Made by a program: the position numbers and the translations under genes
Origin: Octopus sinensis
Taxonomy: Eukaryota
Reading direction: 5' to 3'
DNA length: 64,000 nucleotides
Assembly (NCBI RefSeq): GCF_006345805.1
Contig: NC_042997.1
Span: 42,532,001-42,596,000, forward strand
Part shown: positions 1,716 to 58,091 of the stretch, in pieces
Numbering within the stretch: the first letter of the stretch is position 1
Layout of the letters: the number at the start of each line of letters is the position of its first letter
The notes under the pieces: generated by a model
The model's database searches: none
Told to the model about the DNA's origin: nothing
The model's input: the letters and a program-made list of their open reading frames with translations, nothing else

Positions 1716-3250
1716 CAGTAGAACATCGCAGAATGAGTGCACCATTGTACATGTAATTTGAAGTATGAGCCAAGGCTCATGTGAATTTCTGTCTTGAAAT
1801 ATGAGCAGAAATCCGCAGTACGAGTGAGTTTCATGCCAGTGGCTCCCAGTAGGTGCTGAGCTCACACATGCTCTCCCAACAAGTGCAGTTTCCACTTCCT
1901 CAGTTCATGTGTTTATCTCGTTGTGGCAGCATCCCTGTTGTTTTTTCCTAGTGTTTTTGTTCGGTTTTGTGCATTGTCTACTATTATTTTATAATAATTA
2001 GTTGTGTTAGCCATGGGTCCTAAGAATGTTTGTGCAAAGGACAGTGCTGAGAAGAAGAAAAAACTAATTATGATAGAACTGAAGAAAGAAAGCATTGATA
2101 AACACGAGAGAGGGGTGCATGTAGTGGACATAGCACGTCAATACGACCGAAGCACGTCAACGATCTGCACCATCCAGAAGAAAAAAAGACGAGATCGAGG
2201 CCATTACAACAGCAAAGTGTGTCTTCAGGCTCTCTAAGCAACACACATCTGTCCACGAAGGGATGGAAAAATTGCTTCTTCCGTGGATCAATGAGAAGCA
2301 ACTCTCAGGAGACACGACGATTACGGAGACTGTCGTCTGCTAGAAAGCACGAGCGCTGTATGGGGATCTCCTGAAGCAGAACCCTGAAACATCGACGGAG
2401 GAGACATCAGCAGACACATTTAAAGCCAGTCACGGCTGATTTGATAATTTCAAGAAGAGGACTGGTGTTCATAGCCTCGTCAGGTATGGAGAGGCAACGA
2501 GTTCTGAAACGGAGGCAGCTGAGGATTTCGTGTGTGAATTCCATCAGCTCATTGCATAACAGGTATTTAACTGTGATGAGGCTGGCCTTTTTGGGCAAAA
2601 AATGCCCAGAAGGGAAGAAAATGCCAGGCCACAAGCCTATGAAAGATAGGCTAACTTGCCCTTTGTGCCAATGCAAGTGAAAACTCTGAAAATCCACGAG
2701 CATTCAAGTCACACAAAATCCTGAAGGAGAAGCTGCAGTTCATGTGGAGGGAAAATGTTAAAGCCTGGGTCACCTGGCAATTCTTCAAGTGGGTTGATCT
2801 TGTCTTTAGACCAGCAATGGAAAAGTACCTTCTAGAGAACAATCATTCTCTCAAGGCCCTCCTCATCCTCAACAATGCTCCTGCTCACCCTCCTAACCTT
2901 GAGGATGATATCCTGGATGAATTTAAATTTATAAAAGTTCTCTACCTTTCATGCAACACAACTCCTATCTTGCAGTCCATGGACCAACAGGTAATTTCTA
3001 ATTTTAAGAAATTGTGTACCAAACACCTTTTTCATAGGTGTTTTGAAGTCACCAAAATACAAATCTAACACTTCATGAGTTTTGGAAAAAGCACTACAAC
3101 ATTGTAAACTGCCTGAAAATCATCGATATGGCCTGGCAGGATGTAACAAGGAGAAGGATGGATTCTGCAGGGAAAAAACTGTGGCCTGACTGCGTTTCCA
3201 AAAGAGATTTTAAGGGGTTTGAGTCTGTAGCATAGACTTGTTTGTAATTC
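1716..3250 (+). mobile_element. Tigger/pogo DNA transposon with disrupted CENP-B/DDE transposase
   Basis: TA|CAGTAGAACATCG left-TIR-like start at 1716. ATG at 2013 gives MGPKNVCAKDSAEKKKKLIMIELKKESIDKHERG..., later VFNCDEAGLF, KPMKDRLT, WRENVKAWVT, LLILNNAPAHP, TTPILQSMDQQVISNFK, WKKLWP-like. Frameshifted. Right TIR not found. Confidence 0.9.
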
Positions 3251-6494: not shown

Positions 6495-7020
6495 GTTGCT
6501 TAGTGGTTGGGGTATTTGGCCACATGGTCATAAGGTCATGAGCTTGATTCCCACCATTTTATTTCACATTGCTCTAGCTGGCAAAAATGAATAGTAGGTG
6601 TATTTCAAAGGGCCAGCCTTATCACATTCTGTGTTGTGCTGAATCTCTCTGAGAACTATGTTAAGGGTAGGCATGTCTGTGGAGTGCTCAACCACTTGCA
6701 TGTTAGTTTTGTGAGCACATTATACCATCAATCAAGTCAACTGGAACCCTTAGGGTGGCAAGCTGGCAGAATCGTTAGCACGCCGGGCGAAATGCATAGC
6801 CGTATTTCGTCTGCCGTTACATTCTGAGTTCAAATTCCGCCAAGGTTGACTTTGCCTTTCATCCTTTCGGGGTCGATAAATTAAGTACCAGTTACGCACT
6901 GGGGATCGATGTAATCGACTTAATCCGTTTGTCTGTCCTTGTTTGTCCCCTCTATGTTTAGCCCCTTGTGGGTAGTAAAGAAATAAGGTCAACTGGAACC
7001 CTTGTTGTTGTAACAGACAG
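6495..7020 (+). mobile_element. Old SINE B-related copy interrupted by SINE D
   Basis: tgtatttcaaagggccagccttatcac...gtctgtggagtgctcaaccacttgca...actggaaccct matches the SINE B body and resumes after 7003. Confidence 0.7.
6752..6987 (+). mobile_element. SINE family D, full length
   Basis: 16-bp TSD gtcaactggaaccctt (6736-6751 and 6988-7003). A-box-like tggcagaatcg, B-box-like gagttcaaattcc, tail taaagaaataa. Confidence 0.9.
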
Positions 7021-14429: not shown

Positions 14430-15057
14430 GGTATTGGTTTGGGTATTGGAAATGGATTTTCATTTGGTGAGAGTCACTACTTCTTATTTCATCATTGGCG
14501 TAGACTATCCATTTCTGACCATCTGTTATAATTCAATGAAGGCATTTGTTCATTCCTGATTAGCAAATTGTTGAACCGCTTTATTGTCAGGGCACAACTC
14601 ATGAAGACCCCACTTTTCTTCTCTGTTTTACTTTCCAAATATACTTCAGATGATCCTTCACAAATGGACCAAAGTTTATTAAGCTTCCAGGATAAGTCCC
14701 TGATACTTTGATGCAGATCTTCTTCAATTGCTGTTTCCACTATCTCATTATAGAGAACAGTTGGTCTTTCTGGTCGACAACTATCCAAAAGATCAAAATC
14801 ACCATTTTTGAATTTGTTAAACCACCTTTGGCATTTTGCAACACTCACATCATCATCATCATCATATACAACACATGTTTTCTCCTGTCCATGTTGAAGT
14901 GTTGTCCTTATGACATTTGTAAAGCATGCAATACTGAATAAACAGCTCACTAATGTCCACATCAACATTTGGTCATTAACTCAATGCTGATTGGTTGATA
15001 GCAAGGACACTTTTTATTGGCTTGTAAATTATTTGTGATATGATGTCAGACCATGTA
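14430..15057 (-). mobile_element. mariner transposase N-terminal relic with a (GAT)n expansion
   Basis: ORF 14492-14968: VSVAKCQRWFNKFKNGDFDLLDSCRPERP...IEEDLHQSIRDLS. A WGLHEL (WVPHEL-like) motif lies near 14600. Confidence 0.75.
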
Positions 15058-18369: not shown

Positions 18370-18473
18370 TCTCTTTTACCCTCTATATCTATCTATTTAT
18401 CTATCTCTCTATCTATCTCTCTATCTCTCTATCTATCTATCTATCTATATATCTATCTCAATCTATCTCTCTA

Positions 18474-18506
<33 letters not shown>

Positions 18507-18535
18507 ATCTGTTTCTCTGTCTATCTATCTACAAA
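18370..18535. repeat. (TCTA)n/(TC)n microsatellite
   Basis: Direct inspection. Confidence 0.95.
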
Positions 18536-18708
18536 CACACACACACACGACTGTAGTTAATAAATTTTTTTGCAGCCACATGATTTTGGGTTCAGTCCCA
18601 TTCAGTACCATTTTAGGCAAGCAATTTCTACTAAAGCCCCGGGCTGATCAAAGCTTCATCAATGGATTTGGTCAACAGAAACTGAAAATACCTCATTGCA
18701 GCGAGTAC

Positions 18709-18768
18709 TAAGGTGGCGAGCTGGCAGAAACGTTAGCACTCTGGGCGAAATGCTTAGCAGTATTTCGT
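18709..18768 (+). mobile_element. SINE D 5' head fragment fused to U6
   Basis: taaggtggcgagctggcagaaacgttagcactctgggcgaaatgcttagcagtatttcgt differs at 4 positions from the head at 18880. Confidence 0.9.
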
Positions 18769-18790
18769 ACTAGCTACGGCGGTACATATT

Positions 18791-18823
<33 letters not shown>

Positions 18824-18869
18824 GGCCCCTGTGCAAGGATGACATGCAAATTCGTGAAGCGTTCCATAT
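18767..18869 (+). pseudogene. U6: Full-length U6 snRNA retrocopy
   Basis: gtactagctacggcggtacatattctaaaattggaacgatacagagaagattagcatggcccctgtgcaaggatgacatgcaaattcgtgaagcgttccatat. The ACAGAGA box and AGC triad are intact. It ends in an A-rich run instead of an oligo-T terminator and has no upstream TATA/PSE context. Confidence 0.95.
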
Positions 18870-18879
18870 ATAAAAAAAA

Positions 18880-19099
18880 TAAGGTGGCGAGCTGGCAGAA
18901 ACGTTAGCCCGCTGGGCGAAATGCGTAGCCGTATTTCGTCTGTCTCTACGTTCTGAGTTCAAATTCCGCTGAGGTCGACTTTGCCTTTCATCCTTTCGGG
19001 GTCGATTAAATAAGTACCAGTTACGCACTGGGGTTGATATAATCGCCTTAATCCGTTTGTCTCCTCTGTGTGTAGCCCCTTGTGGGCAGTAAAGAAATA
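18880..19099 (+). mobile_element. SINE D, full length (3' part of the U6 chimera)
   Basis: Homologous to 6752-6987. Followed by the second copy of the 24-bp TSD. Confidence 0.9.
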
Positions 19100-19293
19100 A
19101 GAAACTGAAAATACCTCATTGCATATATGCTTACTTGCTTACGACAGCCCATTAAAGGTGATGATAGTGTCAGTTCAAGACATCCAAGTCTATATGTATG
19201 TGTCTCCCTATCTTGACATCATATGCTGATTGCAAGGAAATGCCACCATCAGATAAGTACTGTTGCTCGTTTGCAATCTTTTTTGAAAATATG

Positions 19294-19470
19294 GCCATGG
19301 CTGTGTGGTAAGGTGCTTGCTCCTCAACCATATGGTTCAGGGTTCTGTACCACTGTGTGGCACCTTGGGCAAGTGTCTTCTGCTAGAGCCCTGGGATGAC
19401 CAAAGCCTTGTGAGTGGATTTGGTAGGCAGAAATTGAAAGAATCCTGTCGTGTATACATACATACAAGCA
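19294..19470 (+). mobile_element. Old SINE A 5' half
   Basis: ggccatggctgtgtggtaagg...caccttgggcaagtgtcttc...gaaattgaaagaatcctgtcg. Confidence 0.8.
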
Positions 19471-19473
19471 TAA

Positions 19474-19512
<39 letters not shown>

Positions 19513-19513
<1 letters not shown>

Positions 19514-20541
19514 TATGGCTGCCCCCTCGTTATCGAGTATGGCCATTGCACGAAGCTTAACTGTTACTGGTGCTGTGATCGAATGTGACTTTTTAGCCCA
19601 GCTAAAGATCTACAATGTCTTGTACAGATTTGGCAGCTAAAACCTTTACTGGTAATAGCCGGCTGTAGTTGTAACTGGGCTTCATGTACCTGTGCATGTC
19701 GTTTAAATCCTCCTGCCGAATTACACTCTCTTCCACATGCCTGACAGATATGATTAGTATGGTGTGTTACACCACCACCAGTGGCCAGGTTGTCACTCAT
19801 CTGTCTCGTTTTATGACTACGAAGATGACTCATGAGTCCAGCTTTACTGAGGCAGGGTCTTGCACAGACATTGCATGTCAGAATCAAAGGAAGACCCTTC
19901 CCTTCTGGAAGTGTAACAGCGATGCCCTTCCTGACATCCCTCCTTACTTTCTCATGTGCAACTCGAGATTTCTCAAACGCGGCTGTCCCCTCATGCACAA
20001 TCCTTCTCCACCTGCTACGATCAATAGCTATGCCTTCCCATGTGTCAGGAGAGATGCAAGCAGCTCTTAAGGAAGCCTTCAGCAAGTCATTATACCTCTT
20101 CTTTGATTTATGTGGAGGTCATTCTCCTTTAGCTAACTCTCCATAAAAGAGTTGTTTTGGCATCCTTGAATCCTTCATTCTGACCAGATGACCACTCCAT
20201 CTGAGCCTTTGCTTTAACACAAGAGCTTCTATACTTACACACCAAGAGCCTTCGAGTATTTCAAGATCACTGATGCGGTCCTTCCACTTAATGCTATCGA
20301 TCCATCTGAGGCACATCTGATGGAAACGTTCCAGATGTTTAAGGTGGTATCGATATGTGACCCACGTCTCGCAAACATATAGAAGAGAAGAGAGCACACA
20401 TGCCTTGTACACCTTTATCTTTGTCTTTCTGTATATGTCTCGCCGACTCCAGAGGCGCTTTTCTAGCCTTCCAAAAGCAACACTTGCTTTCCTAATTCTA
20501 TATGGAACTTCATCATCCACATTGCCATATCTATTAATAGT
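19513..20541 (-). mobile_element. RTE-clade LINE family 2, 3' part (RT thumb region plus three C2H2 fingers, short 3' UTR, (TATG)n tail)
   Basis: TINRYGNVDDEVPYRIRKASVAFGRLEKRLW...YKACVLSSLLYVCETW...QRLRWSGHLVRMKDSRMPKQLFYGEL, then one frameshift into ORF 19564-20085. Confidence 0.9.
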
Positions 20542-20542
20542 T

Positions 20543-20932
20543 AGAGGGAAGAAATCGGAGCCCATTTCAATACAAAATGGAGTGAAACAGGTGGATATTC
20601 TGGCACCGACCCTATTTTCCAAATATTTCACAATGGTGTTCTGTATTGCATTCAGAAACTGCAGATATGGTGTTAACGTCCATTAACGAACCTCTGGCAG
20701 CATATTTAATATCAGGCGCCTTGCTGCAAAAACAAAGATATTTACCTCTGTCATAAGAGACCTTTTGTATGCTGATGATTGTGAGCTTGTAGCACACAGA
20801 GATTGATATGCAACACATTTTGAATGCATTCTCTGATGCTTGCACTGCCTTAGAATTGACAGTCAATCTCAAGAAAACTGTCGTCATGCATCAACCTGCC
20901 CCTGGTAAGCAGTATAGTGTACCAAATATTAT
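20543..20932 (+). mobile_element. Inverted upstream RT segment of the same RTE family 2 element
   Basis: Plus strand: GKKSEPISIQNGVKQVDILAPTLF...[14 protein letters not shown]...LTVNLKKTVVMHQPAPGKQYSVPNI. Confidence 0.9.
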
Positions 20933-24899: not shown

Positions 24900-26255
24900 A
24901 TCATCATCATCATCATCATCATTTAGCGTCCATTTTCCATGCTAGCATGGGTTGGATGGTTCAACTGGGGTCTGTGAAGCCAGAAGGCTTCATCAGGCCC
25001 AGTCAGATCTGGCAGTGTTTCTACGGCTGGATGCCCTTCCTAACGCCAACCTATCCGTGAGTGTAGTGGGTGCTTTTTACGTGCCACCTGCACAGGTTCC
25101 AGACAGAGCTGGCAAACGGCCACGAACGGATGGTGCTTTTACGTGCCACCGGCACGGGGGCCAGGCGAGGCTGGCATCGGACACGGACGGATGGTGCTTT
25201 TACGTGCCACCGGCACAAGGGCCAGGCGAGGCTGGCAACAGACACGAGTGGATGGTGCTTTTACGTTCCACCGGCATGGGGGCTAGGCGAGGCTGGCAGC
25301 AGACACGAACGGATGGTGCTTTTATGTGCCACCGGCACGGAGGCCAGACGGGGCAGCTCCGACAACGACCACGATCGGATGGTTCGCTTAACCACAGCTG
25401 CAATTTCCACTGATGTTGATCGACCTCAATTTTGGTTCTGCTTTCTGATATCTGATTTGATTTGGTTTGATTTTGACTGTTCTCACTGGTCTTGCCGGGT
25501 CTTCTCACGCACAGCATACTTCCATAGGTCTCGGTCTCTAGTCATTTCCTTGGTGAGACCTAAAGTTCGAAGGTCGTGCTTCACCACCTCGTCCCAGGTT
25601 TTCCTGGGTCTACCTCTTCCACAGGTTCCCTCAACTGCTAGGGTATGGCACTTTTGCACACAACTATCTTCACCCATTCTTGTCACATGCCCGTACCAGC
25701 GCAGACGTCACTCTTGCACACCACAACTGATGCTTCTTAGGTCCAACTTTTCTCTCAAGGTACTTACACTCTGTCGATTATGAACACTGACATTACACAT
25801 CCATCGGAGCATACTGGCTTCATTTCTTGCGAGCTTACGCATATCCTCAGCAGTCACAGCCCATGTTTCACTACCATGTAGCATGGCTGTACGTACACAT
25901 GCATCATACAGCCTGCCTTTTACTCTGAGCAAGAGGCCTTTTGTCAACAGCAGGGGTAAGAGCTCTCTAAACTTTGCCCAGGCTATTCTTACTCTAGTAG
26001 TTACACTTTCAGCACCCCCATCCCCGCTACTGACTTGGTCACCTAGGTAGCGGAAGCTATCAACTACTTCTAGTTTTTCTCCCTGGAACGTGGTAGAAGT
26101 TGGTCTCTGCACATTTTCAGTGTTTATTGCTCCTGAGCATCTGCCACAGACAAAAACTATTTTTCTAGTTAGCCTTCCTTTGACATTGCTACACCTCTTA
26201 TGTGTCCATAGCTTACACTTGGTACACCTTATAGAGTTTCTACCTACACCTTTTC
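24900..26255 (-). mobile_element. RTE-clade LINE family 1, 5'-truncated (ORF end plus 3' UTR with 5 tandem units)
   Basis: ORFs 25708-26112 and 25483-25686 (GEKLEVVDSFRYLGD...MLHGSETW...CGRGRPRKTWDEVVKHDL). The 3' UTR ends in (GAT)n. Confidence 0.95.
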
Positions 26256-26904: not shown

Positions 26905-28260
26905 GTTCTCTGGTACTGTTCACTGACGTCATATAATTCCAAACCAATCAAAACCAAACTTCAACGAATATAAGGAAAAGACCCATAACTGTATCCTGTT
27001 AGGAAACCAACCAAGCAGGACGACAAGCTAGACGAAGGAAGAAAAACGTCATCAATTTTTTAACGAATCAAAATCAGAACTGACCCATAACTGTATCTTG
27101 TAAGGAAACCAACCAAGCAGAACGACAAGCTTGACCACAGAGGTAAAACGTCATCAATTTTTTAACGAATCAAAATCAGATCCGCTCGCAGAGAAAAAAT
27201 CTTTTTATAAATTCATCATTCCCTAAGACATACCACTGCCAGTGGGAGTGACTGTTTAAGGATCTGAGAAATTGTAATTCCCCCACCTCCACTATTTTAA
27301 TTCTCTCACTGTGGCCGTAGCAGTAGGAGGCTGTTGATCGTAGCAGCAATGGTAGTGACCACGGTGGTTGTAGTAGTAGTGCTAGTGGGAGCAGTCGTAG
27401 TGGTTGTGGTAGAATTTCATTTTTCTTTTTCGGAAGACCAATGTTTTGTTTTAATATTCCTGGCCTAGGGTGTTCAAACTTGGTCTAAATTTTTTGATGA
27501 AATAAAGTTCTTTATTTTGGCGTTGTGTGAAGGTTACGCTGTCACTGAATTTGTAAAGTGGGTAAGTTGTAAATTTCGGATTTTCATTTGCAGCACATCT
27601 ATCTATGTGTCCGCTGACCGGTATTTTCCGGTATTCAGGGTTTCTAATTTGTGATTTATGCACCGCCATCCTGTTACGTAAGCTATTTTTTGTATGGCCT
27701 ATATATTGCCTATTGCAGCCTGTGCATGTTAAGACGTAAATTAAGTTTTCTGATGCACAGGTGAAGTTTGTTCTAATGGTGAACTGATGGCCTTGTTCTA
27801 GTATAAATTCTGAACCTTCTACCAAGATGACACAGATTCAGCAGTTGGGCCTTCCACATTTTCTAACTGCTGGTTTTGTGGTTGATGTTGAGTGCAGTTT
27901 AGCTTGGGTTAAAATCCTTTTCAAGGATTTTGGTTGCCGTTTACTTTTAATGATGGTGTGTGTTTCGAGGATCCGGTTCATCTTTGGGTCTCCCTTTAGT
28001 AGGGCTGTGCTTTGTAGTATGGTGCTGAAGGCCTCATTATTAAGTGGGTTGTGTGTAGAGATGTAGGGAAGGGTTTTTAATTGTTCTTTCTTTTTTGGTT
28101 TTGTTTGTCTCAGGTCTTCCATACTTAATTTAAGTGCCCGTTGGATTGCACTGTCTATTAGGGGCTGTGGATAGTTTCTATTTATGAGTGTGGTTCTAAG
28201 TTCCTGGAGACGTGTGTGTCAGGTGTTTGTGTCTGATATTATGGTGCAAATCCTTCTAGC
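26905..28260 (-). mobile_element. PLE family 2, 5'-truncated: linker, CGRPNC motif, GIY-YIG endonuclease and 3' region
   Basis: ORF 27838-28122 (LPYISTHNP...KSKRQPKSLKRIL...KCGRPNC) and ORF 27451-27825 (FTCASENLIYVLTCTGCNRQYIGHTKNSLRNRMAVHKSQI...ELYFIKKFRPSLN), separated by one stop. The 3' region has a ~107-bp tandem duplication at ~26980-27180. Confidence 0.9.
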
Positions 28261-37710: not shown

Positions 37711-37869
37711 TTCTGAGTTCAAATTCCGCCGAGGTCGACTTTGCCTTTCATCCTTTCGGGGTCGATTAAATAAGTACCAGTTATGCACTGGGGTCGATGT
37801 AATCGACTTAATCCCTTTGTACTTGTTTGTCCCCTCTATGTTTATCCCCTTGTGGGCAATAAAGAAATA
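37711..37869 (+). mobile_element. SINE D, 5'-truncated, next to (TA)n
   Basis: ttctgagttcaaattccgccgaggtcgactttgcc...gggcaataaagaaata. Confidence 0.85.
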
Positions 37870-39099: not shown

Positions 39100-39282
39100 A
39101 CATACGTTTATACCACATGTGGAGCATTGGCGATTTTTTTCCTCCATTTCCTGTTTCTGACGAAGAGCTTCGCTTGAAATGTAAAAACTACCTTTCTTTC
39201 TTTCCCTCGGTATCTGCTAATACTTTGCATGTACCACATCCTCACATTGTTGCTTTTTTCTTGTGTTTGTTCTTCGTTTATA
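39100..39282 (+). mobile_element. PLE pLTR 3' fragment (another family) with a decayed hammerhead at ~39154-39188
   Basis: ttt-CUGACGA-A-gagc(ttc)gctt-GAAAU-GU-A-aaa followed by a T-rich tail. Confidence 0.6.
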
Positions 39283-39283
39283 T

Positions 39284-42200
39284 CATCATCATCATCATCA
39301 TCATCGTTTAGCGTCCTCTTTCCATGCTAGCATGGGTTGGACGGTTCGACTGGGGTCTGGGAAGCCAGAAGGCTGCAACCAGGCCCAGTCTGATCTGGCA
39401 ATGTTTCTACGACTGGATGCCCTTCCTAATGCCAACCACTCCCTGAGTGTAGTGGGTGCTATTTATGTGCCACCGGCACAGGTGCCAGACGATTCTGGCA
39501 AACGGCCACGATCGGATGGTGCTTTTTATGTGCCGCCGGCACGGGAGCCAAGCGAGGCTGGCAACGGCCACGAACGGATGGTGCTTTTTACGTGCCACCG
39601 GCATGAGACCAGTCGGTGCGGCGCTGGCAACGGCCACGTTCAGGATGGTTCTCTTACGTGCCACCGGCACTGGTATCTCAGCTGCAATTTCCATTGATCT
39701 ATTTCGATTCTCACTTGCCTCAACAGGTCTTCACAAGTAGAGTTTTGTGTCCCAAGAAGGGAAGGTATGCATAAGTGGACTGGCTACATCCCGTGTAGAA
39801 GGCCACGGGTTATGGTCTCACTTGTCCGGCCGGGTCTTCTCACGCACCGCATACTTCCAGAGGTCTTGGTCTCTAGTCATTTCCTAAAGTTCGAAGGTCG
39901 TGCTTCACCACCTCGTCCCAGGTTTTCCTGGGTCTACCTCTTCCACAGGTTCCCTCAACCACTAGGGTGTGGCACTTTTTCACACAACTATCTTCATCCA
40001 TTCTCGCCACATGACAATTCCAGCGCAAACGTCTCTCTTGCACACCACATCTGATGCTTCTTAGGTCCAGCTTTTCTCTCAAGGTACTTACACTCTGTCG
40101 AGTGTGAACACTGACATTACACATCCATCGGAGCATACTGGCTTCATTTCTTGTGAGCTTACGCTTATCCTCAGCAGTCACAGCCCATGTTTCACTACCA
40201 TGTAGCATGGCTGTACGTACACATGCATCATACAGCCTGCCTTTTACTCTGAGCGAGAGGCCTTTTGTCACCAGCAGGGGTAAGAGCTCTCTAAACTTTG
40301 CCCAGGCTATTCTTACTCTAGCAGTTACACTTTCAGCACACCTGCCCCTGCTACTGACTTGGTCCCCTAGGTAATGGAAGCTATCAACTATTTCTAGTTT
40401 TTCTCCCTGGAAAGTGGCAGAAGTTGGTCTCAGAGCATTTTCAGGGTTTATTGCTCCTGAGCATCTGCCACATACAAATAATATCTTCCCAGTTAGCCTT
40501 CCTTTGATATTGCTGCACCTCTTATGTGTCCATAGCTTACACTTGGTGCATCTTATAGAGTTTCTACCTACACCTTTTCTACAGATCGAGCAGGGCCATC
40601 TACCTGAAGGCGTTTGTGATTTGTCTACCTTCCTACTTATTAGGACTTTGGTTTTAGCTAGGTTGACTTTGAGGCCCTTCGATTCTAATCCTTGCTTCCA
40701 CACCTGAAACTTCTCCTCCAGTACTGATTGTGACTCAGCAATTAGAGCAAGGTCATCAGCATAGAGGAGCTCCCAGGGGCATCCTGTCTTGAATTCCTCC
40801 GTTATTGCCTGGAGGACTATGATAAATAGGAGGGGGCTGAGGACTGAGCCATGGTGGACCCCTACCTCTACCCGGAATTCTTCACTGTACTCGTTGCCAA
40901 CCCTCACCTTACTAGCAGCGTCTCTGTACATGGCTCGCACAGCTCTCACTAACCATTCATCTATCCCTAGTTTCCTCATTGACCACCAGATAAGGGGTCG
41001 GGGGACCCTGTCGAAGGCTTTCTCCATGTCAACAAAAGTCAGGTACAGGGGCTTATCTTTGGCTAGGTATTTCTCCTGCAGCTGCCTTACCGGGAATATA
41101 GCATCAGTGGTACTTTTCCCTGGCATGAACCCAAACTGCATCTCATCTAAACTAACTCTCTCTCTAATTAGTTGGGCTATGACCCTCTCCGTAACCTTCA
41201 TTACCTGATCCAACAGCTTGATACCTCTGTAATTATTTGTATCTAGGGCGTCACCTTTACCTTTGTAGCAGTTGACTATTATGCTGCTACACCAGTCATT
41301 GGGTATGACTCCTTCGTGTATCACCTGATTAACTATACGGGTGACTAGGCTATAGCCGACACTACCAGATATTTTGAGCATCTCTGCAGTGATTCCTGAT
41401 GGGCCTGGGGCTTTCTCTGTCTTCATGCTTCTAATTGCCTTAACTACCAAGGAACTGTCAACTCGGATAGCTGGTCCCTCTGTTGGGTCAACATTCGGTA
41501 GACTCTCTTTATCCAATTCATTTTCTTTATTCAGCAACCTTTCATAGTGGCATTTCCAAACCTCTCTCTTTGCATCCTCATTTAGCGCAAGTGAACCATC
41601 TTCCATGCGAACACACTTCTCTCCTACCACATCGCAATTCTCTCTCACACACTGTCTTGCAACACGAAACACCTCCAGTCTTTGGTCCTCACGGCGCAGA
41701 AAGTTGGCAAATTTTTTCTTATCTGCTTCCCCTCTGGCTAGATAAACCTGTCTCCTAGCTTCCCTTTTGGCAGTCTGATACAATTCCCTGCTACCACTCT
41801 TCTTCCAGTCCTTCCAAGCCTGTCTCTTTTCTCTAATAGCCCTGTCTACAACACTGTTCTACCACCACGTTACCTTGGGACGAGAGGGGACTTTGCACCA
41901 GCCACAGATCTGGTCAGTGGCTCTCAGCAGGTTGTCCCTTAGAAACGTCCAGTTGCCTTCTACCCCATGTGATACTCTATCCTCTTCTACTTCGTCAAAG
42001 CCTTCAAGTAACATGTCCCTAAATCTCTGTCCATTCGCAGGATCTTTAAGCTTCCAGATCCTTCTTCTCCATGTTGGTGATCTTCTGGTTGTCCTCTTAG
42101 TCCTGATCCTAAAGTCACTAACTACCAGTCTATGTTGCGGGGTACATTCTTCGCCTGGGAAGGTTTTGGCATTTATAAGCAGCCATCTTTCCCTTTGCCT

Positions 42201-42365
42201 GGCAAGGATGTAGTCAATTTGGCTGGTATGTTGGCCCGATTGGTAGGTGCCTGGTAGGTTTCCTGAAGTTTGTGTTGCAAACCATAAGATTATTTGCATT
42301 GCAGAACTCCAGCAGCCTGGTTCCCTCCTCGTTTCGGGAACCATAGCCATTGCCTCCATGTACAC
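39284..42365 (-). mobile_element. RTE-clade LINE family 1, 3.1-kb 5'-truncated copy (APE C-terminus plus complete RT)
   Basis: ORF 41859-42368 (SQIDYILAR...CTPQHRLVV, APE end). A TGG>TAG nonsense lies near 41860. The 636-aa ORF 39873-41783 has RT motifs (NYRGIKLL, FVDMEKAFDRV, GVHHGSVLSPLLF, LYADDL, YLG). The 3' UTR has 4 units plus (GAT)n. Confidence 0.97.
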
Positions 42366-42744
42366 CATTTGATGAAATTTGTCAAAGCAGATTTTCTCCG
42401 ATTGATGGCCATCCTGTCCCCAACTCTCAATTATTTCCTAGCAAGACAATATTTCCCCATGACCAAACATGTTTCTGCAGATGATTGGAAACAAACGACA
42501 CTGCTTGTAAGACAGTGATATGCATTTACAACTATCATGCGATATCAAGATGAGGAGATAAAACACACACACACACTCATGCATGCATGCATACACACAC
42601 ACACATATATACATCAGGTTTCTTTCAGTTTCCCTCTACCAAATCCACATCCAAAGTTATAGTAGAAGTATAGTAAAGTGCCACACAATGGGACTGAAAA
42701 CATGAGGTTGAGAAACAAATTCAACCACACAGTCAAGGATATAT

Positions 42745-43760
42745 GAATGGCTTGTAAAATCTATACAATACATGTACAGGGGTGCTGTCGGTAAGGTGAG
42801 AGTTTGCAAAGAGTACAGCAATGAATTTAGAGTACAGGTAGGAGTTCATGAAGGTTTGACTCTCAGTCCCCTCCAATTCATCATTGTCATCCAGGCCATA
42901 ACAGAAGAATTTAAGACTGGCTACCCTTGGGACATATTATATACTAACAACTTCATAGAATTAGAAAAAAAATTTCAGGTGTGTAAGCAAAACTTTGAAG
43001 CTAATTTAGCAAAATTCTCATTAGCAGGAAAGCAAACAGGACTTTACTCTCAACAGTAAATGGCCCTGCTCAATATGTAGGAAAGGTGTTGCCAGGAATT
43101 CTATTTGGTGTATTCAGTGTGTGCTATGGACATACAAGAAGGACAGTGGAATCACAGGAAGGTTGTCAGAAAAAGTAGCAATAAACACTAGATTTTCTTG
43201 AATGCTCTGTAGGTCGCAGATAGTTTCTGTCACCTAGGTGACCTAATTAGCAAAGGAGGAGGATGTTCTGAAGGTATAGTTGCTAGGATAAAAATAGGTT
43301 GGACAAAGTTCAGAGAGCTGTTACCGTCAATAAGAGTCTCTCCCCCCAGTCTCTCTCTCTCAGTGAAATTGTATGATGTTTGTGCATGAACAACAATGCT
43401 ACATGGTAGTGAGTTGTGGGCTCTAAATGTAGAGGACATGCAAAGACTAGAAAGGAGAGGAGCTAGTATGCTCTGATGGATGTTGTACATGTATGACAAT
43501 GTGTTGAGAGAAAAATTGAGCATAAGCGAAATGAAAGCATGTAAGAAAGAAGACTGGCCTGGTTTGGTCATGTGATGAGGACAGCTGTGTAAAGAAATGC
43601 TGGTTGCTTAATGTGTATGAAATTTATGGAAGATCGAAACTCAGGATGACATGGGATGATGTAGTGATGGTTAATCTCAAGAAATTAAGCCTCATGGAAG
43701 GGATGACGAAGGACTGAGATGATTGGTGATTCATTGTGCTTGAGAAAACATGTTAATCAG
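42745..43760 (+). mobile_element. Old degraded RTE family 1 RT/3' fragment
   Basis: MYRGAVGKVRVCKEYSNEFRVQVGVHEGLTLSPLQFIIVIQAITEEFKTGYPWDILY aligns with the RT at 39873-41783. Confidence 0.85.
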
Positions 43761-47356: not shown

Positions 47357-47514
47357 ACAGGCTTCATTTAGTTTCTGTCTACCAAATCCACTTACAAGGC
47401 TTTGGTCAACCAAGGTCTATACTTGGCCATCCAAGGAACCATGCAGCAGAACTAAACTGGGAACCAAGTGATTGGGAAGCGAACTTCTTACCACACAGCC
47501 ACCCCTGCACCTGT
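47357..47514 (-). mobile_element. Old SINE A 5' half whose head is the first unit of the satellite
   Basis: acaggcttc...accaaatccacttacaaggctttggtc...cttcttaccacacagccacccctgcacct is the reverse complement of SINE A. Confidence 0.85.
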
Positions 47515-50500
47515 TCCACCCTTGCACCTGTTCCACCCCTGCACCTGTTCCACCCCTGCACCTATGCCACACCTGCACCTATGCCACACCTGCACCTATG
47601 CCACACCTGCACCTATGCCACCCCTGCACCTATTCCACCCCTGCCACTCCTGCACCTGTTCCACCCCTGCACCTGTTCCACCCCTGCACCTGTTCCACCC
47701 CTGCACCTATGCCACACCTGCACCTATGCCACCCCTGCACCTATTCCACCCCTGCACCTATGCCACTCCTGCACCTATGCCACACCTGCACCTATGCCAC
47801 CCCTGCACCTATGCCACCCCTGCACCTATGCCACCTCTGCACCTATGCCACTCCTACACCTATGCCACCCCTGCACCTATGCCACCCCATGCACCTATGC
47901 CACCCCTGCACCTCTGCCACACCTGCACCTATGCCACCCCTGCACCTGCACCTCTGCCACACCTGCACCTATGCCACCCCTGCACCTATGCCACCCCTGT
48001 ACCTATGCCACTCCTGCACCTATGCCACTCCTGCACCTACTCCACACCTGCACCTATGCCACCCCTGCCACACCTGCACCTATGCCACCCCTGCACCTAT
48101 GCCACCCCTGCACCTCTGCCACACCTGCACCTATGCCACCCCTGCACCTCTGCCACACCTGCACCTATGCCACCCCTGCACCTATGCCACCCCTGCACCT
48201 CTGCCACACCTGCACCTATGCCACCCCTGCACCTATGCCACTCCTGCACCTATGCCACCCCTGCACCTCTGCCACACCTGCACCTATGCCACCCCTGCAC
48301 CTATGCCACCCCTGCACCTCTGCCACACCTGCACCTATGCCACCCCTGCACCTCTGCCACACCTGCACCTCTGCCACACCTGCACCTATGCCACCCCTGC
48401 ACCTCTGCCACACCTGCACCTATGCCACCCCTGCACCTATGCCACACCTGCACCTATGCCACACCTGCACCTCTGCCACACCTGCACCTCTGCCACACCT
48501 GCACCTATGCCACCCCTGCACCTATGCCACACCTGCACTATGCCACACCTGCACCTATGCCACCCCTGCACCTCTGCCACACCTGCACCTCTGCCACACC
48601 TGCACCTATGCCACCCCTGCACCTCTGCCACCCCTGCACCTATGCCACACCTGCACCTATGCCACCCCTGCACCTATGCCACACCTGCACCTATGCCACC
48701 CCTGCCACACCTGCACCTATGCCACCCCATGCACCTATGCCACCCCTGCACCTCTGCCACACCTGCACCTATGCCACCTATGCCACCCCTGCCACACCTG
48801 CACCTACTCCACCTGCACCTATGCCACCCCTGCACTATGCACCTATGCCACCCCTGCACCTCTGACCTCTGCCACACCTGCACCTATGCCACCCCTGCAC
48901 CTATGCCAACCCTGCACCTATGCCCTCCTATGCACCTATGCCACACCTGCACCTATGCCACCCCTGCACCTATGCCACACCTGCACCTATGCCACTCCTG
49001 CACCTATGCCACTCCTGCACCTACTGCCACCCCTGCACCTATGCACCCCCCTGCCACACCTGCACCTATGCCACCCCTGCACCTATGCCACACCTGCACC
49101 TCTGCCACACTATGCCACCTATGCCACCCCTGCACCTATGCCACACCTGCACCTATGCCACACCTGCACCTATGCCACCCCTGCCACCTATGCCACACCT
49201 GCACCTATGCCCCCCTGCACCATGCCACCACCTGCACCTATGCCACCCCTGCACCTATGCCACACCTGCACCTATGCCACCCCTGCACCTATGCCACCCC
49301 TGCACCTATGCCACACCTGCACCTATGCCACTCCTGCACCTATGCCACCCCTGCACCTATGCCACCCCTGCACCTATGCCACCCCTGCACCTATGCCACC
49401 TCTGCACCTATGCCACTCCTACACCTATGCCACCCCTGCACCTATGCCACCCCATGCACCTATGCCACCCCTGCACCTCTGCCACACCTGCACCTATGCC
49501 ACCCCTGCACCTCTGCCACACCTGCACCTATGCCACCCCTGCACCTATGCCACCCCCTGTACCTATGCCACTCCTGCACCTATGCCACTCCTGCACCTAC
49601 TCCACACCTGCACCTATGCCCCCCTGCCACACCTGCACCTATGCCACCCCTGCACCTATGCCACCCCTGCACCTCTGCCACACCTGCACCTATGCCACCC
49701 TGCACCTCTGCCACACCTGCACCTATGCCACCCCTGCACCTATGCCACCCCTGCACCTCTGCCACACCTGCACCTATGCCACCCCTGCACCTATGCCACT
49801 CCTGCACCTATGCCACCTGCCACCTCTGCCACACCTGCACCTATGCCACCCCTGCACCTATGCCACCCTGCCCACCTCTGCCACACACCTGCACCTATGC
49901 CACCCCTGCACCCTGCCACACCTGCACCTCTGCCACACCTGCACCTATGCCACCCCTGCACCTCTGCCACACCTGCACCTATGCCACCCCTGCACCTATG
50001 CACACCTGCACCTATGCCACACCTGCACCTCTGCCACACCTGCACCTCTGCCACACCTGCACCTATGCCACCCCTGCACCTATGCCACACCTGCACTATG
50101 CCACACCTGCACCTATGCCACCCCTGCACCTCTGCCACACCTGCACCTCTGCCACACCTGCACCTATGCCACCCCTGCACCTCTGCCACACCTGCACCTC
50201 TGCCACACCTGCACCTATGCCACCCCTGCACCTATGCCACACCTGCACCTATGCCACCCCTGCCACACACCTGCACCTATGCCACCCCATGCACCTATGC
50301 CACCCCTGCACCTCTGCCACACCTACCTATGCCACCTATGCCACCCCTGCCACACCTGCACCTACTCCACACCTGCACCTATGCCACCCCTGCCACACCT
50401 GCACCTATGCCACCCCTGCACCTCTGCCACACCTGCACCTATGCCACCTATGCCACCCCTGCCACTCCTGCACCTATGCCACTCCTGCACCTACGCCACA

Positions 50501-53500
50501 CCTGCACCTATGCCACCCCTGCACCTATGCCACACCTGTACCTATGCCACTCCTGCACCTATGCCACTCCAGCACCTACTCCACACCTGCACCTATGCCA
50601 CCCCTGCCACACCTGCACCTATGCCACCCCTGCACCTATGCCACACCTGCACCTCTGCCACACCTGCACCTATGCCACCCCTGCACCTCTGCCACACCTG
50701 CACCTATGCCACCCCTGCACCTATGCCACCCCTGCACCTCTGCCACACCTGCACCTATGCCACCCCTGCACCTCTGCCACACCTGCACCTATGCCACCCC
50801 TGCACCTATGCCACACCTGCACCTCTGCCACACCTGCACCTATGCCACCCCTGCACCTCTGCCACACCTGCACCTATGCCACCCCTGCACCTCTGCCACA
50901 CCTGCACCTATGCCACCCCTGCACCTATGCCACACCTGCACCTATGCCACACCTGCACCTATGCCACCCCTGCACCTATGCCACACCTGCACCTATGCCA
51001 CCCCTGCACCTCTGCCACACCTGCACCTATGCCACCCCTGCACCTCTGCCACACCTGCACCTCTGCCACACCTGCACCTATGCCACCCCTGCACCTATGC
51101 CACACCTGCACCTATGCCACCCCTGCACCTATGCCACCCCTGCACCTATGCCACCCCTGCACCTATGCCACTCCTGCACCTATGCCACTCCTGCACCTAT
51201 GCCACCCCTGCACCTCTGCCACACCTGCACCTCTGCCACTCCTGCACCTATGCCACCCCTGCACCTCTGCCACACCTGCACCTCTGCCACACCTGCACCT
51301 CTGCCACTCCTGCACCTATGCCACCCCTGCACCTATGCCACCCCTGCACCTATGCCACCCCTGCACCTCTGCCACACCTGCACCTATGTCACTCCTGCAC
51401 CTCTGCCACACCTGCACCTATGCCACCCCTGCACCTCTGCCACACCTGCACCTATGCCACCCCTGCACCTCTGCCACACCTGCACCTCTGCCACACCTGC
51501 ACCTATGCCACCCCTGCACCTCTGCCACACCTGCACCTATGCCACCCCTGCACCTCTGCCACACCTGCACCTCTGCCACACCTGCACCTATGCCACCCCT
51601 GCACCTCTGCCACCCCTGCACCTATGCCACCCCTGCACCTATGCCACCCCTGCACCTATGCCACCCCTGCACCTATGACACTCCTGCACCTCTGCCACTC
51701 CTGCACCTATGCCACCCCTGCACCTCTGCCACACCTGCACCTCTGCCACTCCTGCACCTATGCCACCCCTGCACCTCTGCCACACCTGCACCTCTGCCAC
51801 ACCTGCACCTCTGCCACTCCTGCACCTATGCCACCCCTGCACCTATGCCACCCCTGCACCTCTGCCACACCTGCACCTCTGCCACTCCTGCACCTATGCC
51901 ACCCCTGCACCTCTGCCACACCTGCACCTCTGCCACACCTGCACCTATGCCACCCCTGCACCTATGCCACCCCTGCACCTATGCCACTCCTGCACCTATG
52001 CCACTCCTGCACCTACTCCACACCTGCACCTATGCCACCCCTGCACCTATGCCACCCCTGCACCCCTGCACCTATGCCACCCCTGCACCTATGCCACCCC
52101 TGCACCTATGCCACCCCTGCACCTATGCCACACCTGCACCTCTGCCACACCTGCACCTATGCCACCCCTGCACCTATGCCACTCCTGCACCTACTCCACA
52201 CCTGCACCTATGCCACCTATGCCACCCCTGCCACACCTGCACCTATGCCACACCTGCACCTATGCCACCCCATGCACCTATGCCACCCCTTCACCTCTGC
52301 CACACCTGCACCTACTCCCAACGCACCTATGCCACCCCTGCCACACCTGCACCTATGCCACACCTGCACCTATGCCACCCCTGCCACACCTGCACCTATG
52401 CCACACCTGCACCTATGCCACCCCTGCACCTCTGCCACACCTGCACCTACTCCACACCTGCACCTATGCCACCCCTGCCACACCTGCACCTATGCCACAC
52501 CTGCACCTATGCCACACCTGCACCTATGCCACCCCTGCACCTATGCCACCCCTGCACCTATGCCACCCCTGCACCTATGCCACCCCTGCACCTCTGCCAC
52601 ACCTGCACCTATGCCACTCCTGCACCTACTCCACACCTGCACCTATGCCACCCCTTCCACACCTGCACCTATGCCACCCCTGCACCTATGCCACCCCTGC
52701 CACACCTGCACCTATGCCACACCTGCACCTATGACACTCCTGCACCTCTGCCACACCTGCACCTATGCCACCTATGCCACCCCTGCCACACCTGCACCTA
52801 TGCCACACCTGCACCTATGCCACCCCATGCACCTATGCCACTCCTGCACCTATGCCACTCCTGCACCTACTCCACACCTGCACCTATGCCACTCCTGCAC
52901 CTACGCCACACCTGCACCTATGCCACCCCTGCACCTCTGCCACACCTGCACCTACTCCACACCTGCACCTATGCCACCCCTGCCACACCTGCACCTATGC
53001 CACACCTGCACCTATGCCACCCCATGCACCTATGCCACTCCTGCACCTATGCCACTCCTGCACCTACTCCACCCCTGCCACACCTGCACCTATGCCACCC
53101 CATGCACCTATGCCACCCCTGCCACACCTGCACCTATGCCACACCTGCACCTATGCCACCCCTCCCACACCTGCACCTATGCCACACCTGCACCTATGCC
53201 ACCCCATGCACCTATGCCACCCCTGCCACACCTGCACCTATGCCACCCCTGCCACACCTGCACCTATGCCACACCTGCACCTATGCCACCCCTGTCACAC
53301 CTACACCTATGCCACCCCTGCACCTATGCCACCCCTGCACCTCTGCCACACCTGCACCTATGCCACTCCTGCACCTACTCCACACCTGCACCTATGCCAC
53401 CCCTGCCACACCTGCACCTATGCCACACCTGCACCTATGCCACCCCATGCACCTATGCCACTCCTGCACCTATGCCACCCCATGCACCTATGCCACCCCT

Positions 53501-56123
53501 GCACCTCTGCCACACCTGCACCTATGCCACCTATGCCACCCCTGTCACACCTGCACCTATGCCACACCTGCACCTATGCCACCCCATGCACCTATGCCAC
53601 CCCTGCACCTCTGCCACACCTGCACCTATGCCACCCCTGCCACACCTGCACCTATGCCACACCTGCACCTATGCCACCCCATGCACCTATGCCACTCCTG
53701 CACCTATGCCACTCCTGCACCTACTCCACACCTGCACCTATGCCACCCCTGCACCTATGCCACCCCATGCACCTATGCCACCCCTGCACCTATGCCACAC
53801 CTGCACCTATGCCACCCCATGCACCTATGCCACCCCATGCACCTATGCCACCCCTGCACCTCTGCCATACCTGCACCTATGCCACCTATGCCACCCCTGC
53901 CACTCCTGCACCTATGCCACTCCTGCACCTACGCCACACCTGCACCTATGCCACCCCTGCACCTATGCCACACCTGCACCTATGCCACCCCTGCACCTAT
54001 GCCACCCCTACACCTATGCCACACCTGCACCTATGCCACCCCTGCACCTATGCCACACCTGCACCTATGCCACCCCTGCCACTCCTGCACCTACGCCACA
54101 CCTGCACCTATGCCACCCCTGCACCTATGCCACTCCTGCACCTACGCCACACCTGCACCTATGCCACCCCTGCACCTATGCCACACCTGCACCTATGCCA
54201 CACCTGCACCTATGCCACCCCTGCACCTACGCCACACCTGCACCTATGCCACCCCTGCATCTATGCCACCTATGCCACCCCTGCCACTCCTGCACCTATG
54301 CCACTCCTGCACCTATGCCACACCTGCACCTATGCCACACCTGCACCTATGCCACCCCTGCACCTATGCCACCCCTGCACCTATCCCACACCTGCACCTA
54401 TGCCACCCCTGCACCTACGCCACACCTGCACCTATGCCACCCCTACACCTATGCCACACCTGCACCTATGCCACCCCTGCACCTCTGCCACACCTGCACC
54501 TATGCCACCCCTGCCACTCCTGCACCTATGCCACTCCTGCACCTATGCCACCCCTGCACCTATGCCACACCTGCACCTATGCCACCCCTGCACCTCTGCC
54601 ACACTGCACCTATGCCACCCCTGCACCTATGCCACCCCTGCACCTATGCCACCCCTACACCTATGCCACACACCTGCACCTATGCCACCCCTGCACCTCT
54701 GCCACACCTGCACCTATGCCACCTATGCCACCCCTGCCACTCCTGCACCTATGCCACCCCTGCACCTATGCCACCTATGCCACCCCTGTCACACCTACAC
54801 CTATGCCACCCCACCCCTGCACCTATGCCACACCTGCACCTATGCCACCCCTGCACCTATGCCACCCCTGCACCTATGCCACACCTGCACCTATGCCACC
54901 CCTGCACCTATGCCACCCCTGCACCTATGCCACCCCTGCACCTATGCCACCCCTGCACCTATGCCACCCCTGCACCTATGCCACCCCTGCACCTATGCCA
55001 CCCCTGCACCTATGCCACCCCTGCACATGCCACACCTGCACCTATGCCACCCTGCACCTATGCCACTCCTGCACCACCTATGCCACCCCTGCACCTATGC
55101 CACCCCTGCACCTATGCCACCCCTGCCACTCCTGCACCCCTGCCACTCCTGCACCTCTGCCACACCTGCACCTATGCCACCCCATGCACCTATGCCACCC
55201 CTGCACCTCTGCCACACCTGCACCTCTGCCACACCTGCACCTATGCCACCCCTGCACCTCTGCCACCCCATGCACCTATGCCACTCCTGCCACACCTGCA
55301 CCTATGCCACTCCTGCACCACCTATGCCACTCTCTGCACCTCTGCCACCCCATGCACCTATGCCACTCCTGCACCTATGCCACACCTGCACCTCTGCCAC
55401 CCCTGCACTATGCCACTCCTGCACCTATGCCACTCCTGCACCTATGCCACACCTGCACCTCTGCCACACCTGCACCTATGCCACCCCTGCACCTATGCCA
55501 CTCCTGCACCTATGCCACACCTGCACCTCTGCCACCCCTGCCCCTATGCCACCCCTGCACCTATGCCACCCCTGCACCTATGCCACTCCTGCACCTCTGC
55601 CACACCTGCACCTATGCCACCCCATGCACCTATGCCACTCCTGCACCTCTGCCACCCCTGCCACACCTGCACCTATGCCACCCCTGCCACTCCTGCACCT
55701 ATGCCACACCTGCACCTCTGCCACACCTGCACCTCTGCCACCCCTGCACCTATGCCACCCCATGCACCTATGCCACCCCTGCACCTATGCCACACCTGCA
55801 CCTCTGCCACACCTGCACCTATACCACCCCATGCACCTATGCCACCCCTGCACCTATGCCACCCCTGCACCTCTGCCACCCCTGCACCTATTCCACCCCT
55901 GTCACACCTGCGCCACCCCTGCACCTATGCCACACCTACACCTATGCCACCCCTGCACCTATGCCACACCCACACCTATGCCACCCCTGCACCTATGCCA
56001 CCCCTGCACCTATGCCACCCCTGCACCTATGCCACCCCTACACCTATGCCACACCTGCACCTATGCCACCCCTGCACCTATGCCACCCCTGCACCTCTGC
56101 ACCTATTCCACCCCTGTACCTAT
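47498..56123. repeat. 8.6-kb tandem array of a 17-bp unit (GCCACCCCTGCACCTAT and variants), about 500 units
   Basis: Unit variants CCCC/CACC/CTCC and CTAT/CTCT/CTAC. The 17-aa period in all three plus frames confirms a 17-nt period. Confidence 0.98.
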
Positions 56124-56598: not shown

Positions 56599-56922
56599 TC
56601 ATCATCATCATCATCGTTTAACGTCCGTTTTCCGCGCTAGCATGGGTTGGACGGTTCGACCAGGGTCTGGGAAGCCAGAAGGCTGCACCAGGCTCCAGTC
56701 TGATCTGGCAGTGTTTCCACAGCTGGATGCCCTTCCTAATGCCAACCACTCCGTGAGTGTAGTGGGTGCTTTTTACGTGCCACCGGCACAGGTGCCTGGG
56801 GGGTCTGGCATTGGCCACGATCGGTCGGTGCTTTTAACGTGCCACCAGCACGGAAGCCAGCCAAGGCAGCGCTGGCATTGGCCACATTCGGATGGTGCTT
56901 TTTATGTGCCACCGGCACAGGT
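56599..56922 (-). mobile_element. RTE 3'-UTR fragment (3 units)
   Basis: (CAT)n then gtttaacgtccg...ggtgctttttacgtgccacc-type motif three times. Confidence 0.9.
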
Positions 56923-58091
56923 AAAGAAGAAAATCATTTGTTCCGACTCTTTGATCTGAGTTGAAAGGGGATCAATAAACAAGTACCAGTCCAGAGCAGT
57001 GGACTGGCAAAATTGTCAGAGCATTAGACAGAGATGCTTTTGTGGTACTTGTTCCAGCTCTTTATGTTCTGTGTTCAAATTCTGTTGATGGCCTGGGTTA
57101 ATCATCTGACTATGGGACAACAGATGGTTACAAACTTATGAAAGCTGCAGTAAGTGCAGGACGAGTGTGGCCATCTACTACTGAAGTTGAATGACAATGA
57201 TGACGAATGAATGAATGTATTCTCCCCATCTATTATTAACCCTACACCAGCAAATCGAATTAAACATTAATCAGTTATCCATTTATCTCAATTCCCCATT
57301 GTAGACTGGCCTTGAATATTTCTCAAAATAGCCAATATTAAATAGCATGTCAGGATGTGCACAGTCTAATCCGAATATCTCTGAGAGCTGTTTTCACAAT
57401 TTCCATTGCTACACATTGTCCTTTCATTTACAAGAGACAACCACATTTATCAGACTATAATAATCTGTTCTTTTCTATTCTATCCTATCCTTTAGCAGAG
57501 GATTTGGCGTTGACACTAGAAACTAGCAAATTACTTGTCAGTCTCCATTTAATGTATTGTCCTACTTCAGAATGATCTGCTCTGTTTTTACATGCTCTAC
57601 CGAACTCTTTAGGTAGAAAGGGACATCAACACCTTATGTATCTAGTCTCTGTAACTCCCCTGGCTCCATGAGAGTCTTCACGTAATCACTTAAACTACCA
57701 GAAATAGCAGTTAAATCTGCCTCATATCATACCCTCTCATTTTATAAAAAGTTGTAAGCAATGGATAAGGCAATCCTAGATATTACAGTGAAGAAAAAAA
57801 AAAGAAAAAGAAATGAAGACAGGATGTGAATAAAAGCTATGCAATTCTAAATTTTAAGGTCAAAGTTCAAATGTCACCAGGTCAAACTTGCTTCTTAATC
57901 TGTATGGGCAATGATTAAAAATGTACAAGTAATCATTTTTCTAGGAAATCCTTATCAAAAAGTATTAAGATTGCTATTGTGTTTGGATTCTCAGTTGACA
58001 AATGTTCAATTGCTCTTTTCCTAAAATATATCATGAATCAGTTCTTCTTATATTTACTCTTTATCCACTCCACACAAAATATCCTATTCAT

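Follow-up and report, generated by a model that had tools for sequence, protein, structure and literature searches.

Our analysis of a 64-kb stretch of octopus DNA (hereafter the window) revealed a composite in which the head of a SINE D element, a U6 snRNA copy, and a second, full-length SINE D lie within one pair of target-site duplications, and this composite is a dead tripartite chimeric retrocopy, neither a gene nor a new SINE. Its structure is best explained, and was probably produced, by a single LINE-mediated TPRT insertion with two template switches. By comparison with published cases, it appears to be of a kind already known from mammals, lizards, and fungi, here in a new host lineage; considered alone, it is a neutral fossil in decay that shows no hint of a function.

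Within the repeat pair, eight extra nucleotides, the SINE D head, U6, an A-rich linker, and a full SINE D follow one another from 5′ to 3′ (Table 1), with the head, U6, and SINE D all in plus orientation and joined by a 2-nt overlap and a 10-nt A-run. The identical 24-mer that the original prediction had placed on both sides of these parts, AGAAACTGAAAATACCTCATTGCA, was exact at the two positions and occurred exactly twice in the window, against a chance expectation of 0 even at 3 mismatches. The eight extra nucleotides, the 60-nt head, and the A-rich linker that it had described were confirmed by sequence reading and alignment. The insert comprises a 399-nt block plus one copy of the repeat. 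Alignment to SINE A copies showed that the left duplication falls where SINE A reads ggaaactgaaagaagcctgtcgta, and 18560-18700 joined to 19124-19175, with a single repeat copy retained, was colinear with 8 other SINE A copies. Because the joined flanks are colinear with SINE A, the whole block behaves as one insertion relative to that element, and removing the insert restores a continuous SINE A, in agreement with the earlier claim that the unit sits inside an older copy of this family. Direct observation thus establishes which parts are present, how they are ordered and oriented, and where each begins and ends, as well as that there is one duplication and that the empty site can be restored. 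An assembly artefact was considered and rejected, since the sequence contains no Ns, the two heads differ, and U6 stands between them.

Table 1. Components of the composite and of its SINE A host, in positions of the window.
Feature	Position	Strand	Remarks
Host SINE A (CORE-type octopus SINE), upstream part	18573..18676	+	At least 15 further copies within the window match it
Left target-site duplication, 24 bp	18677..18700	+	Exact repeat of 19100-19123; SINE A 3′ sequence
Filler GCGAGTAC	18701..18708	+	8 nt at the 5′ junction; matches neither SINE A, SINE D, nor U6
SINE D head, nt 1-60	18709..18768	+	56/60 identical to 18880-18939
U6 snRNA retrocopy	18767..18869	+	From nt 1 to CCAUAU, U-tract missing; GT 18767-18768 common with the head
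A-rich linker ATAAAAAAAA	18870..18879	+	Read directly from the sequence
Complete SINE D, 220 nt	18880..19099	+	Family tail ...GTAAAGAAATA; 85-88% identity to 6751-6985, 37711-37869, and O. vulgaris L002:10143-10375, copies that start and end alike
Right target-site duplication, 24 bp	19100..19123	+	Exact repeat of 18677-18700
Host SINE A tail remainder	19124..19150	+	Degenerate TA/TG-rich end; SINE A alignment

SINE A, with at least 15 copies in the window, carries CCTTGGGCAAGT, a type of motif known as a hallmark of the CORE domain (PMC5786205), and the octopus CORE-SINE OR1 is a probable relative. Immediately before the host copy there is a (TATC)n microsatellite (18386-18531), and a neighboring SINE A at 19312-19450 has an (ATAC)n tail (19454-19512); such microsatellite tails gave weak chance Rfam matches to miRNA families.

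SINE D covers only about 1-2% of the sequence. Translated SINE D matches an Octopus bimaculoides protein and a second query matches an Octopus vulgaris protein, and SINE D is also present at the corresponding loci L001 (O. bimaculoides, 76 kb) and L002 (O. vulgaris, 20 kb), which identifies the window as octopus DNA; a LINE RT query and a concatenated SINE-peptide query yielded only L002 as a further octopus locus. Together with the 64-kb window, these loci make up the ~160 kb of octopus DNA that was compared. The ends of SINE D were defined from independent copies at 6751-6985, L002:10143-10375, and L001:40900-40605 and from copies 5′-truncated at 36737 and 37711. The family starts with (T)AAGG(T/C)GGCGAGCTGG and ends in ...GTAAAGAAATA with no poly(A), and the same tail closes the copies at 6985, 37869, L002:10375, and L001:40605; no A-run precedes the 5′ end of the other copies. 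Both SINE D pieces of the composite begin at the first base found in the independent copies. The downstream piece had been described as complete, which is correct for its start and end, as these are the same as in its relatives, but not for its interior, from which ~15 nt have been deleted. Target-site duplications of four other SINE D insertions measured ~11-21 bp; that at 6751 is 16 bp long, L001 gave ~11-14 bp, and the L002 example spans ~21 bp and includes 2 mismatches. The duplication at the focal locus has 24 bp.

The two heads differ at four sites, as originally reported (18738/18909, 18740/18911, 18754/18925, and 18759/18930). Divergence from consensus amounted to 2/60 in the first head, 3/60 in the second, ~6-7/160 in the SINE body, and three changes in the U6 core, and this similar divergence of all parts fits one event. 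No private mutation is common to both heads; the "gctggg" that they share is also found in the O. vulgaris copy. At nt 51, the two heads carry A and C where most other copies carry G, a pattern that is easier to obtain if two different SINE D RNAs were copied and that mildly favors such an origin. The fact that all four head differences are transversions was also considered as a clue and set aside, since comparison with the family consensus gives one transition and four transversions, which is not significant (transition share in the family, ~60%).

O. bimaculoides additionally has a sister subfamily of SINE D with a different tail. On the minus strand of L001, at 65980-66640, three copies of this subfamily lie head-to-tail, the tail ...gaatat of one directly abutting the head aaggcggc of the next, an arrangement that could stem either from tail-targeted insertion or from end-to-end template jumps between SINE RNAs. 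If end-to-end jumps made it, the triple would be relevant to the mechanism at the focal locus; it was not retained as a sign of frequent template switching, since it could equally reflect tail-targeted insertion. A SINE segment duplicated around 10 Ns at L001 ~40790 (minus strand) was rejected as an assembly-gap artefact of the O. bimaculoides chromosome and not a biological structure.

The U6 segment matched Rfam RF00026 at 18767-18873 with 103.7 bits (gathering threshold, 44; E = 6.6e-26; model positions 1-105) and was the sole U6 in the window, even when permissive thresholds were included. Its 5′ stem-loop, GUACUAGC-UACG-GCGGUAC, folds intact with a UACG tetraloop and departs from the Rfam consensus by compensated changes, indicating that the copy derives from a genuine lineage-specific U6. 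The conserved core carries three changes, namely two CpG to TpG and one A to T. The description of this U6 as complete held for its 5′ end, which reaches model position 1, but not for its 3′ end, where one U of the terminal U-tract is left, followed by ATA8, the tail having been replaced by ATAAAAAAAA. The GT microhomology that had been noted at the head/U6 junction is present: the dinucleotide closes the head and at the same time opens U6. Judged by context alone, this U6 is a retrocopy and not a gene: the 60 nt upstream are the SINE D head, and the 3′ end reads CCATAT followed by the linker with no TTTT, so that neither promoter nor terminator context is present. The linker would represent the oligo(A) tail of the U6 RNA. 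A shortened U-tail followed by poly(A) was frequent among the U6 matches listed in our protein search, and U6-poly(A) copies are a recognized pseudogene class that has been attributed to adenylated surveillance intermediates (PMC4476161).

In the mechanism that we propose, an octopus LINE enzyme that normally moves SINE D via its ...GTAAAGAAATA tail would have nicked a SINE A copy, and a SINE D RNA would have been primed at the nick through this tail and copied to its 5′ end. The enzyme would then have made an end-to-end jump onto the 3′ end of a U6 RNA with a trimmed, oligoadenylated U-tract and copied U6 to nt 1, after which a second jump, assisted by the 2-nt GT microhomology, would have led into a SINE D RNA at nt 60, to be copied to nt 1. 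Eight extra nucleotides would have been added as the cDNA was joined to the upstream DNA, and staggered nicks would have given rise to the one 24-bp target-site duplication. Here we infer in what order the jumps were made, that the U6 template was adenylated, and which enzyme acted. The filler may be an untemplated addition or the product of a micro-jump at the 5′ junction; the 5-mers that GCGAGTAC shares with SINE D and U6 are expected by chance.

Several observations favor such a single event, which was also the first of the two origins put forward in the original prediction and is now the best-supported explanation. One perfect 24-bp duplication brackets everything, excision of the insert restores SINE A, and the length of the duplication fits that of the other SINE D insertions. 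All parts share one orientation, and each upstream part reaches exactly to an RNA 5′ end, as template copying predicts, while the 3′-most part bears the intact SINE D tail that is needed for priming. Among the five structural criteria for LINE-mediated chimeric retrocopies (Buzdin/Gogvadze), four describe the octopus locus: direct fusion in the same orientation, one flanking repeat pair with a reconstructable empty site, upstream parts copied to RNA 5′ ends, and a 3′ part bearing the TPRT-priming 3′ end of a retrotransposon. The fifth, parts without duplications of their own, is ambiguous here, as U6 and the A-run are bounded by the repeated 60-nt head; geometry and length argue against this repeat being a true duplication, though not to the point of exclusion. 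A rough prior calculation, for which we ourselves estimated, to the order of magnitude, SINE D insertions, U6 retrocopies, and how often templates are switched, placed the single event ahead by about two orders of magnitude. Two features weigh on the other side. The head repeated on both sides of U6 and the A-run is also a signature of nested insertion, and the 3′ SINE is full length while the 5′ part is an internal-entry fragment, whereas typical chimeras show the reverse, with a 5′-truncated 3′ part and a whole RNA as the 5′ part (PMC2104539). Neither the window nor L001 or L002 yielded a LINE ending in the SINE D tail.

Published precedents lend further weight to the single event. Two tripartite B2 SINE-U6-L1 chimeras with 15-16-bp repeats are known from mouse (Gogvadze et al. 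2007, PMC2104539), and a WEIRD-Mg-SINE-MGL tripartite chimera with a 14-bp repeat is known from Magnaporthe (PMC2104539). Like the octopus composite, these join copies of three RNAs in one orientation within one short perfect repeat pair, and the mouse order corresponds to that in octopus, a 5′ SINE being followed by U6 and then by a retrotransposon 3′ end. The octopus locus differs from them in its longer repeat (24 bp versus 14-16 bp), in that its 3′ priming part is a full-length SINE and not a 5′-truncated LINE, and in that one SINE family supplied both its first and its third part, hence the ambiguity with nested insertion; moreover, its U6 is joined through an A-run and not a U-tract, its SINE tail is non-poly(A), and its host is a cephalopod. 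Bipartite chimeras were described in platypus (U6-Mon-1, U6-L2) and Anolis (U6-AnolisSINE2, U6-L2, U6-RTE) (Doucet et al. 2015, PMC4476161), where U6 template switching emerged as a general LINE property demonstrated outside the L1 clade (PMC4476161). In the SINE-bearing ones, as in octopus, U6 lies upstream of a SINE moved by a stringent LINE that recognizes its tail, and target duplications are present. However, they are bipartite, platypus U6 is mostly 5′-truncated with duplications of 1-9 bp while the octopus U6 is 5′-complete, and stringent LINEs were not observed to carry a U6 extended by poly(A) (Doucet et al. 2015), in contrast to the A-run that follows U6 here. A search of the literature, which was not exhaustive, found no report of a U6 chimera in cephalopods or other molluscs.

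The alternative that survives best is a sequence of two insertions, in which SINE D with the 8 filler nucleotides first entered SINE A and generated the 24-bp duplication, and U6-oligo(A) later entered SINE D with a 60-bp duplication of nt 1-60. This was the second origin put forward in the original prediction; it remains live but weaker, requiring an oversized duplication at the exact SINE start, and we consider it unlikely. U6 with an A-run inside a direct repeat is the arrangement of the known U6-poly(A) pseudogene class (PMC4476161), which shares with the octopus locus a shortened U-tail, a following A-rich tract, and a direct repeat around them, and tripartite structures may arise from two independent events (Doucet et al., PMC4476161). 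Four differences in 60 bp are also about what is expected of two copies when the other parts are ~3-5% diverged. The octopus repeat, unlike that of these pseudogenes, is 60 bp long, coincides with the SINE 5′ end, and is enclosed in an outer duplication. The supposed duplication would have to begin exactly at the first base of the SINE and would exceed ~2.5-fold the length of every target duplication that we measured (11-24 bp), and the insertion would have to adopt the orientation of the SINE and land in a family that makes up so little of the sequence. Position 51 would require two changes, or C to A, in one copy, and the presumed nick, ..GTAC/TAAGG.., lacks the T-richness that would go with a poly(A) tail. 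For a nested U6-poly(A) insertion, one would expect a target duplication of ordinary size and a nick of the LINE endonuclease type; the absence of both here lowers the probability of this route without reducing it to nothing. Nesting also predicts that the outer repeat is the older and hence the less well preserved; in fact it is the inner one (56/60) that has diverged more than the outer (24/24), but the comparison of 4/60 with 0/24 differences is not significant (p ~0.25), and divergence does not separate the single and nested models.

Fusion at the RNA level, in which a head-U6-SINE D RNA formed by ligation (RtcB-type) or trans-splicing was then copied in one pass, would also yield a single duplication and a common orientation, and ligation is an accepted alternative for U6/LINE-1 chimeras (PMC11838501). 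For the octopus locus, we regard it as quite improbable: RtcB-type ligation joins the 2′,3′-cyclic-phosphate U-tail of U6 to a 5′-OH RNA, while the octopus copy has lost its U-tract and shows an A-run instead, two ligations would be required, and both SINE pieces start at natural 5′ ends and not at cleavage sites.

Less probable again is the possibility that the composite was copied secondarily from another head-U6-SINE D locus in the genome, transcribed by Pol III from the head or by read-through and moved via the SINE D tail as part of a young U6-SINE family. The unit does have a LINE-recognizable tail, its 5′ head contains an A-box-like motif, and the 8 extra nucleotides could be the 5′ flank of a source locus. 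The SINE D head resembles a degenerate tRNA, with an acceptor-like GG(T/C)GGCG 5′ arm followed by a D-arm, GCTG...TAGC, that includes the A-box-like AGCTGGCAGAA (18719-18729), and then by a further arm; neither ARAGORN nor Rfam called a tRNA on it. The B-box-like (T-loop) motif GAGTTCAAATTCC corresponds to SINE nt 76-88 (18955-18967) and therefore lies beyond the 60-nt head. The A- and B-box assignments were made by eye, from D-arm- and T-loop-like motifs. The A-box-like motif of the full SINE D (18890-18900) is correctly spaced from its own B-box-like motif, while the only B-box-like motif available to the A-box-like D-arm of the 5′ head is ~240 nt downstream, so that no A/B pair of the kind that marks a SINE family stands at the 5′ end of the unit. 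With the proper pair in the downstream SINE D, the favored Pol III transcript would be a plain SINE D, leaving U6 outside the main transcript. TFIIIC can span a long A-B distance, ~200 bp, in yeast SNR6, and the composite is accordingly poorly equipped to act as a single Pol III unit, an arrangement unfavorable rather than impossible. TTTT is indeed absent from 18701-19099, up to and including the tail, as the original prediction had stated, with the next T-run at 19279; this carries little weight, because 18% of composition-matched shuffles likewise lacked TTTT.

The ~160 kb of octopus DNA (the window, L001, and L002) contained no second copy of the composite, a sample far too small for copy number, and no U6 was detected in L001 (76 kb) or L002 (20 kb). 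When the minus-strand ORF at 18777-19115, which runs through SINE D and U6, was searched against 5.8 billion proteins, a database with almost no octopus SINE ORFs, none of the matches listed (120 realigned) spanned the junction; these 120 comprised one O. bimaculoides SINE D match together with U6 translations. Exact look-ups of window ORFs close to the locus likewise gave no recorded match. A U6 3′ end with a SINE D head no more than 25 nt behind it gave 0 hits in metagenome contigs, and the SINE D-head control also gave 0 in this collection, which is without octopus DNA; the SINE D core gave 0 hits in prokaryote genomes and 0 in viral contigs, again collections without octopus DNA. The copy itself is ~3-5% diverged and bears the 15-nt deletion. 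The proposal of a nascent U6-containing SINE transcribed as one Pol III RNA was therefore not upheld, given a head without a B box, a U6 without promoter and terminator, and a diverged copy. Least probable of all the claims considered here is that the composite is a member or founder of a transcribed head-U6-SINE D unit copied more than once by its partner LINE, or, in a milder form, that U6-SINE chimeras are frequent in octopus. If true, the transcribed composite would be the first SINE-like family carrying U6, arisen in cephalopods. A point of comparison is SINEU, described from crocodilians as multi-copy SINEs with U1 or U2 at the 5′ end (Kojima 2015, as cited in PMC5786205); they share with the octopus locus an snRNA-derived sequence and a LINE-dependent tail, while the octopus U6 is internal, known from one copy, and without a promoter of its own.

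The remainder of the window is rich in other repeats, and no host gene was evident in its 64 kb. A LINE at 39873-42368 (minus strand) retains an open 636-aa RT ORF with RVT_1 and a PHD finger, with fragments at 25708-26112 (minus) and 42772-43059 (plus); its best database relatives are only ~57% identical, many of them with an AP-endonuclease domain, and it could be recently active in octopus. At its 3′ end, this LINE bears no match to the tail of SINE D. Some 450 bp beyond the composite on its downstream side, a LINE 3′ fragment at 19564-20631 (minus) encodes C2H2 zinc fingers and the C-terminal region of an RT. Transposon remnants include GIY-YIG (Penelope-like) sequence at 27451-28122 (minus), DDE_1 (pogo-like) sequence at 2742-3068 (plus), and a Mos1 HTH (mariner-like) at 14492-14968 (minus). 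An ORF-bearing repeat with the motif ...GAFYVPPAQVP... was found on both strands (24952-25783, 39263-39740, 56642-56959, 58214-58591, and 60295-60606); it adjoins LINE copies twice and may represent either the 5′ part of a LINE or a repeat family in its own right. Finally, an 8.6-kb tandem array of the 17-nt unit GCCACCCCTGCACCTAT (47498-56100; ~514 copies, 85% matches) produces spurious ORFs of up to 2890 aa.

If the composite did arise in the single LINE-mediated insertion that we favor, the reverse transcriptase that moves a major octopus SINE makes both end-to-end and microhomology-assisted jumps and can capture U6, an ability documented so far from vertebrates and a fungus. Template jumping is a proposed route by which new SINEs gain heads and tails. 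Octopus genomes are unusually SINE-rich, and a census of chimeras in them could show the origin of this SINE diversity.
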